DNA of 64,000 nt, taken from the sequence record NC_048821.1. One strand, written 5' to 3'. A program made the translations under genes and the position numbers. Shown piece by piece: positions 4,015 to 8,829 of the stretch. The first letter of the stretch is position 1, and the number at the start of each line of letters is the position of its first letter. The notes under the pieces were generated by a model that had not been told where the DNA came from, made no database searches, and saw nothing but the letters and a program-made list of their open reading frames with translations.

Positions 4015-6081
4015 ATGATCTCTGGTAAAAATGACTGGGATAACGTAGGCGACAATGATCAATCACCTGCAAACCCACAATCGCAAAATCCAACCAATCA
4101 CAAAGCTGCACAACAAGGAGCAGAAAAAATGTCATCAAACAAAAACCAATCTCTACTAGACTTCGCTAACGTTCTTGGTATGAACTCAATGATGGCCGGC
4201 GGTCGTAGCGTTCCTGTTGTGAACGATATCGTTAAGAAGTTGAATGACTTCCGAGAAGAGAAAGATAAGTCATCTATCAACCCTGCACTACAGCAAATCA
4301 TCCCGCAAGAAATCATTTCAATGGACACTAACTTGTCTCCAGTATTGCCGGGTATCATTCTTGCACGTCGTGTAGGTAACACACTGATCATCGCACCAGT
4401 GTTGTTCTCTAACCGTGAAATCGCTATCCAGCTGGAAGAGATTCACACTAACGGCACTATGGGTCAAAACGTACCTAGCAAAGTGCAAATCAAACAAGCA
4501 CCTAACCGTTACATGAGTAAAGAAGTGGTTCGTAACATCATCGAATCAATGAAGCTTCGTTACGCTAATGAAGGTGTGAACGACGTACAACTAATCACGT
4601 CTCGCGTTATCGACCTAGAATCTTACCAAACTCCTGAAAACAAAGAGATTGGTATGGCAGATCTTCTATCTAACGTTATCCTAGAAGAGTGGGAACGTGG
4701 CATGAAGACTACTCTAGCGAAGACTATGGTTAAGACTGGTACGGAACTGAAAACTCCGTTCATCGACAACAAAGGTCAAATCGATAAAAACGCTTACGGT
4801 CCAACTAAGTGTGCGACTGCTCGTATCGAGTCTATCAAAACTCAATCTGGCGCTCCAATCACTATCGACGGTGTACCATCTGGTGCTAACATGTTGGTTC
4901 AGCTACAAACTGCACCAAAAGAAGGTCAACAGTACAACGCAGATGCAGCTCGCGGTATCGTGAATGCTTACTCTAACGTTCTACTAGTTGGTGTTCCTTT
5001 TGCAGTTTACACTGCCCAACTACAAAACCGCCAAGTTCAACCGTTGTTCAACCCAATGATGAACGCCAACGACGCGTACCCTCACGGTTACCACCCACTG
5101 CAAGCAGTTGTAGTAATGGAAACTTCTCGTGCTCAAGCACAGATGGGTAACAACTCTGGTATCGCATCTTGGTTGATGGCGCTATACGCTAACATGACAG
5201 TGAACCACAACCACTTGTTCACTGAACCTCTACGTATGGCTAAGATTGGTGCTCGTGGTAACCTGTCTCACATCGAACGTCGTATCGATGACATGATCGC
5301 AGGCGCTCTACCTAAACGTGACGATAAACTGAAGATCAACGAAGCTCGTCTAAAAGACATGGACTTCACTTCATCTTGGATTCGTCGTAACATCGCTGAG
5401 CGTGCATCGTACGCTATCGACCTAGTAGAGTTTGGTAACGAAGCTGCACTACACAACTTCCTACTAAACCTAAGCGGTAACAACGAAGCTGCGACTGAAA
5501 ACAAACTGGTTATCGTTAAGATGATCGATGCAATCACTGGCGGTGAAGCGACTCGTCGCATTGCAGAGAACAAGCAATCTGGTAAAGGTTGGACTCCAGA
5601 GAAACAAGTTCTATGTCCATCTGCCATCATCAGCCCAGTTGGTACATTCAAGCACAACGGTCACCTACACTCTCTACAAGAAGTAGACGAGATGTTCCTA
5701 AGCCGTCTATGTCCAACTGACACTACCCCAATGGTTCAGTACCTACAAGCGGTATACGGTGACGGTGGTCAAACACCAGAAGCTGTACGTCGCTACCGCA
5801 TGACTACCATGCTTCCTACACTTATCAACGATGATGTAAACATCACTGGTACTTCACGTCGTCACTACGTGTCTCCAGAGTTTGCAGTATTCCTAGGTCA
5901 ATGTATGGATAAACTTGGTAACCTTAATGCATCTGGTACTATGGGTACGTTTGCTTCTAACGTTGCAATCTACGCTCCATCAGTTGAGTTTGCTGTACAA
6001 GCAGCAGCTGGCGCTTCTGGTGCGTACATGACCAACTCTGGTGGCATTGTAGGTAATAGCTCAGGCATTACTTACGCGTAA
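4015..6081 (+). CDS. chmA: Chimallin, the phage nuclear shell protein (phiKZ gp54 / 201phi2-1 gp105-like)
   Basis: 688 aa directly upstream of the nvRNAP beta-prime N-terminal subunit (diagnostic synteny); strong high-expression codon bias; own promoter and terminator; extended N- and C-terminal tails. Confidence 0.8.
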   Translation: MISGKNDWDNVGDNDQSPANPQSQNPTNHKAAQQGAEKMSSNKNQSLLDFANVLGMNSMMAGGRSVPVVNDIVKKLNDFREEKDKSSINPALQQIIPQEIISMDTNLSPVLPGIILARRVGNTLIIAPVLFSNREIAIQLEEIHTNGTMGQNVPSKVQIKQAPNRYMSKEVVRNIIESMKLRYANEGVNDVQLITSRVIDLESYQTPENKEIGMADLLSNVILEEWERGMKTTLAKTMVKTGTELKTPFIDNKGQIDKNAYGPTKCATARIESIKTQSGAPITIDGVPSGANMLVQLQTAPKEGQQYNADAARGIVNAYSNVLLVGVPFAVYTAQLQNRQVQPLFNPMMNANDAYPHGYHPLQAVVVMETSRAQAQMGNNSGIASWLMALYANMTVNHNHLFTEPLRMAKIGARGNLSHIERRIDDMIAGALPKRDDKLKINEARLKDMDFTSSWIRRNIAERASYAIDLVEFGNEAALHNFLLNLSGNNEAATENKLVIVKMIDAITGGEATRRIAENKQSGKGWTPEKQVLCPSAIISPVGTFKHNGHLHSLQEVDEMFLSRLCPTDTTPMVQYLQAVYGDGGQTPEAVRRYRMTTMLPTLINDDVNITGTSRRHYVSPEFAVFLGQCMDKLGNLNASGTMGTFASNVAIYAPSVEFAVQAAAGASGAYMTNSGGIVGNSSGITYA

Positions 6082-6176: not shown

Positions 6177-7589
6177 ATGTCGACCCCTGAACGTGATGTT
6201 GCAGTAGAGGCACTAGCCGCTGAGTCTTTTGAAGACCTTCTACCTATCAAGCAGTTCGAGCGTTATCAAGAACAGCTAGGGCAAAAAGTCTACGATGATC
6301 AGAGCTACTACGCTCCGCTATATCCCGATTTCCGAGATTTCAACTTTGCACATGATACTTCGAAATCACAACCTATTTACCTGAACGACTTTGACTTCTG
6401 TCTAGAAGAAGATCGAGAACGTTTAGAGAAACTCATCCGTATGGACTTTGATGCGGATACTTTTGAAACCATCGCTAGTTGTGGTTGTGACAAACCACTG
6501 AAAGGTAACCACTTAATTGGTTCAGGAAGAGTGTGTCGTAATTGTGGTAACCAAGTCGAACGCATAGTAGATACCGAGTTATCCACTAAGGTGTGGTTGC
6601 GATTACCCACTGGTGTACATTCATTTATTAACCCGGCCTTCTACAGAACCTTTTTGCAGAAGATCGCCACCGCTTCCCCAAAGATCGAAATCATTACTTA
6701 CATCATTGATCCTGGGTATCGTCGTAAAATCAATTCAAATAGTTCTGAGAAACTGCGAGAGTTACAAAGTCACTTAAAACGCTTAATCACTCGTTTGGAC
6801 CTAAACGAGTTTGTTGTTCACGCCGACACTATCATGGATCACTTCCTATTAGGTGAAGGTCGTACACTGACTGCTTTAAAGAATGCGGATGCCAAAGAAA
6901 TCATGTTAGGTTATATGGATTTCAAAGAAACGGTATTCACCAACTACTTACCGGTCCCTAACAAACTTTCGACCGTAATCGAGAAGTCTGGTAAGGAACG
7001 TTACGCGTCGAGCAGTCAGTTAAAAATGGACTCTACGTACATGTCTATCGCAGACACCAAAGACAATACAGATTTGTATCAGGTGAATGAGTTCGACATA
7101 CATGAATCCGTGGCAAGGGTAGGTAAAGGTATTGTTGCCTTAGCATCTCAAAACTCGCAACACCTAAAGGACTTTTTGTTCCCTAAGCCTGGTGCTGCGC
7201 GTAAGCTGGTTGCTTCTGGTTCTCTACCTATGACGGGTCGTTCAGTTATTACCTCTAAAACAGGTATCCATAACCCGGGGATGATCGAAGTTCCGTGGAT
7301 TATGGCGTTGTCTCAATTAGAGAAACAAATCTTATCTCATCTGTATCGCAAGGGATATTCCCCAATGGCAGCACTGACTAAGATTTCTAAAGCTGCGCAC
7401 TACCTCGATCCAGAGATCGATGAGTTCTTCCGTTATCATGAAGAACGAAACGACATAGTCTGTAAAGCCGGTCGTATGCCATCGATCCAGTACCTATCAC
7501 GACGTACGTTCTTTGCCCGTATTAAAAGGGATCTAGGAGATCAATCTATTGGTCTACCGATACTGTCTGTGTCCAATTTTAATGCCGAT
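6177..7589 (+). CDS. nvRNAP beta-prime N-terminal subunit (phiKZ gp55-like), exon 1
   Basis: Zn motif CGCD...CRNCG, GRSVIT, GRMPSI, ends at NFNAD; joined to 7982-8170 it restores NADFDGD (533 aa spliced). Confidence 0.9.
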
Positions 7590-7981
7590 AGCACTAACTT
7601 TAACGCTTACCCGTCATTAAAGTTAAAGATACTGTCCCATTAGGCGAGAAATCCCTAATGTGTATTTCCCTGAATTGCTGGAACACCCACAAAAGTTCAC
7701 AACCTGTATGGTGAGGAAACTCAGAAACAATAGTGAACCTGTCCTAAGCTAACCAATAACGCTAAGGGATATTAACAAGGGGTAATCAGCAGCCAAGTCC
7801 TGCTTAAGTGGGAAAAGGTTCAACGACTATCCGGTAGCGCGGAGTACCTTAGGTAGAGATATCTAGGGGAAGTGGGGAAACTCCTAAGTCTGAGAAGATA
7901 TGGAGATGATATAGTCTATCTACAGTGTGAGGGTCATCAAACTCACATGGGAGTTAATCGCTCCCCCCTTTGGTGTAGATG
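7590..7981 (+). mobile_element. Group I self-splicing intron (IA-like), no homing endonuclease ORF
   Basis: P AATTGCTGGAAC (7673-7684), Q AATCAGCAGC (7784-7793), R GTTCAACGACTA (7818-7829), S ATGATATAGTCT (7906-7917); 5-prime exon ends in T and intron ends in G; P7.1/P7.2, P8 (GAGA loop) and P9 stems visible. Confidence 0.92.
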
Positions 7982-8170
7982 TTCGATGGTGACCAGATGA
8001 CACTATTCTTCTTACCTGACTTAAGATCTAAGGCAGTAAGTTATGGTGCATTCGGTCACCAATCGGTATTTGATGAAAACAAACCGTTCTCAATCAGTCG
8101 ACACTATAAACAACCGTCGACCAACTTGATGAACATCAACAACGTAATGCGTAAACTGGAGTTCAAATAA
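7982..8170 (+). CDS. nvRNAP beta-prime N-terminal subunit, exon 2
   Basis: Begins FDGDQMT, completing the catalytic NADFDGD motif. Confidence 0.9.
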   Translation, partial: FDGDQMTLFFLPDLRSKAVSYGAFGHQSVFDENKPFSISRHYKQPSTNLMNINNVMRKLEFK

Positions 8171-8829
8171 TGAATGCATGTCAAGCTTTCTCTATCGGTA
8201 CATCAGGGACTGTGCATGACAACCAGATACAGTCTTATGCGAACATGGTCCAGATGAACTTTGAACAAGTTCAAAACGTAGGAGGTTGGTTAGGTCAAGG
8301 AGCCGACAACTTCATGAACTCGTTTAAGAACTTTGTTAACTCGAGAGCTTGGGACTTAGCAAGTCGTATTCGTGGTGGCGCTGAAGATCACTATATCGGT
8401 TACTACGATATTGGTATCGCGACATCCATGGAATCACTGCAAGCTTCTCAAGGCTTTATGCGTGACTACATCATGGCTATGCCTAATGTGATGGAGTTGT
8501 ATGACGAGGGAGAACTTAGTGGTTGGGAAGGTCAGTTTAGCGACTGGTGTTCCGGTACTGGTGAAGATAACATTTACTACCGTCGACAAATGCACGGTCT
8601 ATTACAACTAGATCAAGTCGATGAGCGTAATGTTGCACGAACCAAACACTATTACGATTCGGTTGCGGGTACAGGTCTGAGCGTTCGTGAACGTTATGAC
8701 TTAGCAACTACTCGTACCGCCGTTAACCACCATCTAGCAAACAGTCTGTTTGACTTCACTAGCAGTGATGGTTCTCTTCGTAAATCAGCGCAGGAAGAAG
8801 AAGACGCTAAAAAGGCAGGAGGGGAGTAA
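8170..8829 (+). CDS. Conserved phiKZ-like hypothetical protein
   Basis: 219 aa; TAATG stop/start overlap with the RNAP exon 2. Confidence 0.7.
   Translation: MNACQAFSIGTSGTVHDNQIQSYANMVQMNFEQVQNVGGWLGQGADNFMNSFKNFVNSRAWDLASRIRGGAEDHYIGYYDIGIATSMESLQASQGFMRDYIMAMPNVMELYDEGELSGWEGQFSDWCSGTGEDNIYYRRQMHGLLQLDQVDERNVARTKHYYDSVAGTGLSVRERYDLATTRTAVNHHLANSLFDFTSSDGSLRKSAQEEEDAKKAGGE

Follow-up and report, generated by a model that had tools for sequence, protein, structure and literature searches.

A probable ORF-less, IA-like group I intron within the NADFDGD motif of the nvRNAP beta-prime gene of Photobacterium phage PDCC-1

In the GenBank record of Photobacterium phage PDCC-1 (NC_048821 / MN562221), a nucleus-forming jumbo phage of the Gorgonvirinae, the gene for the N-terminal beta-prime subunit of the non-virion RNA polymerase (nvRNAP) appears as two separate CDSs, and the break falls within NADFDGD, the magnesium-binding motif that forms the three-Asp metal-binding loop of this subunit. 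This raises the question of what separates the two halves of the motif and how an intact subunit could be made from them. We addressed it by computational analysis of the first 64 kb of the genome, hereafter referred to as the window. The 392 nt at 7590-7981 very probably represent a self-splicing, IA-like group I intron that has lost its homing-endonuclease gene, occupies the NADFDGD loop at a late stage of the homing cycle and arrived there recently by lateral transfer.

The interrupted gene is a homolog of phiKZ gp55. When an uninterrupted ortholog was used as the query, the best PDB match was 7OGP chain A (E=5.7e-36), with NADFDGD included in the match, and the PDCC-1 gene itself matched phrog_2987 ('RNA polymerase beta subunit') at E=3e-143. 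It lies directly downstream of the gene for chimallin, the order seen in phiKZ gp54-gp55, and in-silico splicing restores its NADFDGD motif, all of which bears out the nvRNAP beta-prime identity put forward in the original prediction. Uninterrupted homologs match PF00623; neither PDCC-1 exon by itself reaches any Pfam family, and no second nvRNAP-type beta-prime N copy was seen within the window. Annotations of this gene (6177-8170) and of its homologous loci (L002-L009) disagree, with either 'putative DNA helicase' or 'RNA polymerase beta subunit' plus 'hypothetical protein' being given, and the chimallin of several relatives is annotated as 'diguanylate cyclase/phosphodiesterase'.

Exon 1 ends with ...AAT GCC GAT at 7589, past which the ORF that starts at 6177 runs on from ...NFNAD for 17 codons of unrelated sequence until it meets a stop at 7643. 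Exon 2 starts at 7982 with TTC GAT GGT GAC CAG ATG; the annotated ATG at 7979, which is followed by FDGDQM, consists of the last three bases of the intron. The insertion is therefore in phase 0, between the Asp and Phe codons (NAD|FDGD), and the two flanking ORFs are as first described. In three related phages, phiKT1019, pTD1 and phiKT1028, the gene is an uninterrupted CDS of 1602 bp (533 aa), exactly 392 bp shorter. Joining 6177-7589 to 7982-8170 in silico yields the 533 aa that had been predicted, with zero internal stops, and this product aligns to the three uninterrupted proteins with zero gaps at 88-94% identity. Across the join the protein reads ...SNFNADFDGDQM... and the nucleotide junction ...AATGCCGAT|TTCGATGGT..., while the phrog_2987 profile continues over it from position 418 in exon 1 to 419 in exon 2. 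As the bases flanking the two intron boundaries differ, the junction cannot slide and only 7589/7982 restores the motif; the proposed junction agrees in this with the intron-minus alleles.

A cmscan search of the whole window returned RF00028 (Intron_gpI) as the sole Rfam family at the gathering threshold, which is 50 bits for this family. The match, on the + strand at 7615-7930, spans model positions 1-253 of 253 (66.5 bits, E=1.1e-14) and confirms the group I assignment that had been made by eye from the letters. The same threshold misses one of the related introns in the Logan contigs (L098), one of the HNH-bearing introns at the same site (L100) and a second PDCC-1 intron, though all three are homologous by alignment or BLAST. 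Inside 7590-7981 there is no ORF longer than 42 aa on either strand, so that the intron encodes no endonuclease of its own, as had been noted. None of the public RNA runs searched for the locus contains more than 5% of the sampled words, and the contig from one RNA candidate run spans only 7782-7941 of a relative. By its sequence, 7590-7981 is a complete group I intron, and we infer its splicing and exact junction from these comparisons.

To obtain the fold, the PDCC-1 intron was aligned with its counterparts in the Logan contigs L097 and L098 (approximately 90% identical pairwise), and an RNAalifold consensus was combined with the P7 pseudoknot (Table 1). Over the three copies, 11 base pairs carry compensatory double changes against a single non-pairing cell, and because of these pairs the ribozyme would appear to be under selection for structure. 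The conserved core helices P3, P4, P5, P6, P7 and P8 were all recovered, with P7.1/P7.2 lying between P7 and the 3' strand of P3, the arrangement that marks subgroup IA; the predicted architecture is accordingly termed IA-like. The P7.1/P7.2 pair, the GAGA-capped P8 and the P9 stem closed immediately before the terminal G had all been pointed out earlier, and each reappears in the comparative fold. Rfam's own alignment places P3' and P8 differently; this placement was rejected, since the covariation in P3 fits the comparative fold only. In P6a, the substitutions found in L097/L098 and in a contig from run X3 (7800-7807 in X3) preserve the pairing and make the loop UUCG. A terminal G likewise ends the introns of L097, L098, L100 and L102.

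Table 1. Coordinates of the genes, exons, intron and predicted helices in the window
Feature	Position	Strand	Remarks
Chimallin (nuclear shell protein) gene	4015..6081	+	phrog_4795 E=2e-184; PF25677
Exon 1, nvRNAP beta-prime N-terminal subunit	6177..7589	+	471 codons, ends ...SNFNAD; phrog_2987 profile 2-418
ORF-less group I intron, 392 nt, IA-like (predicted)	7590..7981	+	RF00028 66.5 bits; missing exactly in phiKT1019, pTD1 and phiKT1028; 11 compensatory pairs
Exon 2, nvRNAP beta-prime N-terminal subunit	7982..8170	+	62 codons + stop, begins FDGDQM; phrog_2987 profile 419-476
P1	7587..7636	+	Predicted; GAU|AG 7587-7591 with CUGUC 7632-7636; U7589-G7634 wobble at 5' splice site
P1a extension, enclosed by P1	7598-7604 / 7622-7628	+	Predicted; intron-internal helix
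In-frame degenerate duplicate of exon-1 tail	7590..7610 (21 nt)	+	AGCACTAACTTTAACGCTTAC against pTD1 exon AGCAACTTTAACGCTGAC; read directly from the sequences
P2 hairpin	7638-47 / 7652-60	+	Comparative fold
P3	7665-72 / 7873-80	+	Two compensatory pairs in L097
P4	7676-81 / 7786-91	+	Comparative fold
P5	7685-88 / 7780-83, extensions to 7771	+	Comparative fold
P6/P6a	7792-7819	+	Comparative fold; domain of P4, P5, P5 extensions and P6/P6a is 7676..7819
P7, guanosine-binding helix	7825-29 (GACUA) / 7912-16 (UAGUC)	+	No variation in any copy
P7.1	7830-33 / 7840-43	+	RNAalifold consensus; invariant, without covariation support of its own
P7.2, GAGA loop	7847-55 / 7860-68	+	RNAalifold consensus; invariant, without covariation support of its own
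P8, GAGA cap 7892-7895	7881-84 / 7902-05 and 7888-91 / 7896-99	+	One compensatory pair; loop GAAA in relatives
P9	7918-24 (ATCTACA) / 7974-80 (TGTAGAT), then G7981	+	Two independent compensatory double changes in relatives
P9.1 within P9	7925-32 / 7941-48	+	P9 domain (7918..7981) totals five compensatory pairs
P9.2 within P9	7949-54 / 7960-66	+	Comparative fold

Interruption at this place is common. Among 40 homolog clusters surveyed at E<=1e-50, half (20) have the motif uninterrupted and the other 20 have it broken: one after the first residue, five after NA, five after NAD and nine after NADFDG. All four insertion sites are in phase 0 and each follows a U-ending codon (AAU, GCU, GAU or GGU), and the nucleases of the hotspot introns are all of the I-HmuI-like HNH/NUMOD type. 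The phiKZ gene is broken at N|ADFDGD by an intron with the HNH gene gp56 and that of EL at NA|DFDGD. The NADFDGD motif is an insertion hotspot for introns.

Four Vibrio phages, Aphrodite1, VP4B, USC-1 and 5 TSL-2019, carry an intron of another kind (type B, the PDCC-1 kind being type A) 9 nt downstream, at NADFDG|DQM. The copies of Aphrodite1 and VP4B have no ORF, those of USC-1 and 5 TSL-2019 hold a 323-aa HNH ORF, and the P1 of this intron has six obvious pairs (exon GACGGU with GCCGUC). The two types share the host gene, the subfamily Gorgonvirinae and a related IA-like ribozyme with common P4-P6 extension sequences, and both exist in ORF-less and HNH-bearing forms; they differ in the place of the ORF, in the 3' (P9) region in type B but in the 5' loop in type A, and the type B core is only about 53% identical to that of PDCC-1. 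No allele with both introns was found among those compared. Type B introns are unannotated in the four records concerned (L003, L007, L008 and L009, for Aphrodite1, USC-1, VP4B and 5 TSL-2019). Comparison of Aphrodite1 with USC-1 gives 94-99% identity in the exons but only 88% in the type B intron, the opposite of the type A pattern.

The type A pattern is seen between PDCC-1, from Photobacterium in Mexico, and Vibrio phage 2 TSL-2019, from Australia, which show 0/392 differences in the intron vs 73/789 in the flanking exon bases (P about 3e-17). The closest differences lie at 7586, 4 nt upstream, and at 8002, 21 nt downstream. More generally, any two copies of the type A ribozyme are about 90% identical, while exon 1 identity is 62-76%. 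The type A intron appears to have moved laterally, and since the intron of PDCC-1 and 2 TSL-2019 is 100% identical while its flanks differ by 9%, this copy would have moved recently.

The comparison with relatives that had been recommended turned up both intron-minus alleles and alleles with an endonuclease gene. At the PDCC-1 site, L100 and L102 have HNH_3+NUMOD1 ORFs of 335 and 320 aa, and cores 68% and 59% identical to that of PDCC-1. L098 has the same ribozyme as PDCC-1, and its ORF aligns to the HNH profile in the C-terminal part only, from the distal HNH motif on and without the region of the first catalytic His. Contigs from runs X1 and X2 retain the 7589 junction and have 1082 nt in place of 7590-7633. 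Next to these forms, the PDCC-1 intron looks like the ORF-less stage of a homing cycle, and the type A history read from the comparison would run through the same ribozyme with its 5' loop holding an insert of ~1.1 kb or an HNH ORF in decay. DNA run X1, compared with 7300-8300, contains at least three alleles together (a diverged ORF-less type A, type A with the 1082-nt insert and the 3' end of type B), so competing alleles co-occur in one sample.

How an intron without a nuclease gene could spread is then to be asked. The simplest idea is that it was mobilised by a nuclease supplied in trans from a co-infecting relative. The co-conversion tracts implied by the PDCC-1/2 TSL-2019 comparison, less than 4 nt upstream and at most 20 nt downstream, are very short, which is unusual for endonuclease-driven homing and counts against our main reading. 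The L100-type HNH has no close homolog from Vibrio or Photobacterium among the top phage matches. Exact look-up of the exon-2 mini-ORF returned PDCC-1 and 2 TSL-2019 only and a homology search with it gave zero matches; in IMG/VR, an exact 23-mer from the core was found in these two isolates only, and the protein scan added no further close relatives. A JGI metagenome contig (L094; Ga0172371_10323859, 1-1200) has the 23-nt P4'/P6 core word and was set aside as an unrelated group I intron with tRNA-gene-like flanks.

Occupancy of the site could plausibly, if not assuredly, confer immunity to a cognate nuclease, as the original prediction suggested. A wider form of this idea, which would add to the view of the intron as a selfish remnant, is that it is kept for the benefit of the phage, either by shielding the nvRNAP gene from the HNH enzymes of co-infecting relatives, those of the HNH-bearing type A form and of type B, or by gating the nvRNAP through splicing efficiency; we consider this possible but improbable. 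An intron HNH does confer a competitive advantage on PhiPA3 against phiKZ (PMC11620839). Sister phages carry the other intron 9 nt downstream, two of them with its HNH gene, the two introns have not been met in one allele, run X1 shows several alleles side by side, and the identical intron has spread recently with no nuclease of its own. However, the contacts of I-HmuI-type HNH enzymes lie mostly in downstream-exon DNA, and alleles with an intron can be nicked by them too, so that an intron 9 bp upstream may not protect, and the lethality of imprecise loss explains persistence well enough.

The selfish, ORF-less intron that we favour needs a P1 helix, and here the original prediction had failed to identify a canonical U-G pair at the 5' splice site. 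There is in fact a short P1, with a predicted U7589-G7634 wobble, in which exon GAU pairs with GUC at 7634-7636; only these three exon nucleotides pair, which counts against our reading. The evidence comes largely from the relatives. The first ~45 nt of the intron are a variable cassette (44 nt in PDCC-1, 47 nt in L097, 870 nt with an ORF in L098) with nothing in common, and the three sequences become identical again at GTCCCATTAGG, window position 7634. In L100 and L102, a perfect helix of 11 and 14 bp, respectively, joins the bases just past the 5' splice site to those that immediately precede the GUC abutting P2, by which the ORF comes to lie in the P1a loop and the GUC is brought opposite the exon GAU. 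This GUC guide is conserved in five introns at the site (PDCC-1, L097, L098, L100 and L102), beside a P1a of 7-14 bp, and the P1a of L097 differs from that of PDCC-1 by a compensatory change from U-A to A-U. The Asp codon at the site is GAT in 6/6 intron-bearing alleles and GAC in 3/3 intron-less alleles. No convincing P10 could be drawn with the bases at the start of exon 2. A pairing of three exon nucleotides can suffice, given that the Azoarcus pre-tRNA-Ile intron functions with a three-nucleotide internal guide sequence; that intron, of about 200 nt in a tRNA anticodon loop, belongs to subgroup IC3 and is unrelated in sequence to the one in PDCC-1.

The minimum free energy (MFE) structure favours the G7634 P1 for the identical intron in the exon context of 2 TSL-2019, and for L097. 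In the exon context of PDCC-1, the unconstrained MFE structure instead pairs exon 7575-7584 with 7615-7624 in a competing helix, and the same intron and junction could be served by a P1 built on it: a U7589-G7613 wobble, GAU paired with GUC at 7613-7615, and an extension made up of a 3-nt bulge (GCC) and 9 bp, 7575-7583/7616-7624. L097 and L098 also allow pairings of this kind, and yet we regard this alternative as unlikely. The exon of 2 TSL-2019 introduces two mismatches into its helix, upon which the MFE moves to the G7634 model; a variant in run X1 carries G7613T; and L100 and L102 are without such an element but have clear long-range P1a helices beside the conserved GUC. We rank it below the G7634 P1 because of the G7613T variant and its absence from L100/L102.

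With P1 predicted at G7634, the 5' strand of P1a is provided by a duplicate of the exon tail. The first 21 nt of the intron, AGCACTAACTTTAACGCTTAC, match the pTD1 exon sequence AGCAACTTTAACGCTGAC at 17/18 positions with a 3-nt insert, and the sequence after them, CCGTCATT, is similar to the live junction of L097 (GAT|CGTCATT). On one reading of these sequences, the ORF and the original 3' strand of P1a would have been lost together; a second copy of the exon tail would then have made up for the loss, and a change of GAT to TAC would have silenced the former splice site. Loizos et al. are said to have described in 1994 that the td intron holds an exon-like pseudo-homing site beside its ORF. A bolder proposal, for which we would claim little likelihood, combines these points. 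The seven-codon NADFDGD stretch would be an arena of staggered introns that exclude one another, and the PDCC-1 intron a nuclease-free 'vaccine' allele that spreads between Vibrio/Photobacterium phages with almost no flanking conversion and blocks both the HNH form of the same site and type B; the 21-nt duplicate would have been left behind by a repair that re-created P1a after loss of the nuclease gene.

The route from gene to subunit can be outlined from the chemistry of group I introns. The pre-mRNA would fold so that the exon bases G-A-U7589 pair with G7634-U-C beside P2, stabilised by P1a; an exogenous guanosine bound in P7 would attack after U7589; and G7981, presented by the P9 stem, would next occupy the same P7 site, so that the exons are ligated and encode the 533-aa subunit. 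Left unspliced, the transcript would give a truncated protein with NAD plus 17 residues at its end. Since an unspliced gene gives such a product, the production of active nvRNAP should depend on splicing, and the dependence of middle/late transcription that the original prediction had claimed would follow logically. The intron would persist because only its precise deletion leaves the catalytic loop intact.

It is exceedingly improbable that the insertion goes unspliced, with the gene dead or two polypeptides (NAD... and MFDGD...) reassembling, even though GenBank lists two CDSs and chimallivirus RNAP subunits are naturally split elsewhere (PMC7598289), for the break would cut the three-Asp loop, the known natural split site falls after the DPBB domain and not within it (PMC7598289), PDCC-1 and 2 TSL-2019 are viable isolates, the window holds no second beta-prime N copy and the 11 compensatory pairs point to selection for ribozyme structure. 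One observation on the homologous phiKZ intron counts against splicing here: a long-read transcriptome study saw no spliced reads (PMC10914365).

The kind of element is already known from phiKZ, and its PDCC-1 representative had been unannotated until now. A passage of PMC11512511 cites Mesyanzhinov 2002 and Ceyssens 2014 for the phiKZ gp55 and gp180 introns and the endonucleases gp56, gp72 and gp179. In phiKZ, gp55, gp56 (HNH) and gp56.1 form the orthologous gene after chimallin, with the same motif and a group I intron (RF00028, 75.6 bits) that is likewise in phase 0 after a U-ending codon and ends in G. The nvRNAP structure puts 417-DFDGD-421 in gp55 (PMC8287921); annotated PHIKZ055 stops at N415, and the solved chain therefore spans the homologous junction and joins both exons. 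The phiKZ intron differs in lying 6 nt upstream (N|ADFDGD), in its 334-aa HNH+NUMOD1 ORF in the 5' part, compared with the ORF-less PDCC-1 intron at NAD|FDGD, and in a ribozyme only ~52% identical.

PhiPA3 gp210 offers a second parallel: a group I intron in a multisubunit RNAP gene of a chimallivirus, beside conserved catalytic aspartates, whose HNH nicking endonuclease is of the I-HmuI type, as in the relatives of PDCC-1. There the host gene encodes a virion RNAP beta-type subunit (a homolog of phiKZ gp178) and not the nvRNAP beta-prime, the nuclease is active, and its competitive role has been shown experimentally (Birkholz et al. 2024, Science; PMC11620839; reviewed in PMC12908238). Within the collection of papers searched, none was found that connects introns with PDCC-1 or Aphrodite1, or phage introns with NADFDGD.

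Further afield, the T-even td, nrdB and sunY introns and those of the SPO1/SP82 DNA polymerase genes are of the IA type with P7.1/P7.2 and sit in conserved motifs of essential enzymes. They too occur naturally in ORF-less and ORF-bearing versions, with HNH nicking enzymes (I-HmuI/II) and competition between the introns of related phages. Their host genes are different ones, and the PDCC-1 guide is distinguished by its pairing with only three exon nucleotides.

Similar elements may lie elsewhere in the PDCC-1 genome, outside the window. A second interrupted RNAP gene at genome positions 158924-162239 (L106, 44924-48239) comprises gp149 (477 aa), gp150 (416 aa, HNH_3 E=8e-12), a gap of ~390 nt and gp151 (59 aa). 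The gap matches the intron of the window (blastn, genome 161677-161868, 75-79%) and contains GATATAGTC, and is below the Rfam gathering threshold. At 222925-224161 (L108, 8925-10161), 450 nt of non-coding sequence separate gp196, annotated as an HNH endonuclease, from gp197; either a further intron or a free-standing homing endonuclease may be present here.

On every point that could be checked, the original prediction was right both in what it described and in how it read it. The element itself is of an expected kind at an expected kind of place, and the locus is moderately interesting as an experimental system. Beyond the intron as such, the analysis offers a solution for P1, a staggered hotspot, an allele series and an identical copy in diverged flanks. 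One practical consequence is that in PDCC-1, 2 TSL-2019, Aphrodite1, VP4B, USC-1 and 5 TSL-2019, the catalytic subunit of the main transcription enzyme is listed as a truncated ORF and a small hypothetical protein. A further point concerns folding. In PDCC-1 the gene is transcribed within a phage nucleus or vesicle, where there are no ribosomes that could aid folding, and a ribozyme that pairs with three exon nucleotides would have to fold where ribosomes are excluded. Finally, the close relatives provide an allele series, from the empty site through ORF-less type A, type A forms that hold an insert or an HNH gene in decay, and ORF-less type B to type B with HNH, as material for tests of intron competition and immunity in nucleus-forming phages, a question opened by the work on PhiPA3 and phiKZ.
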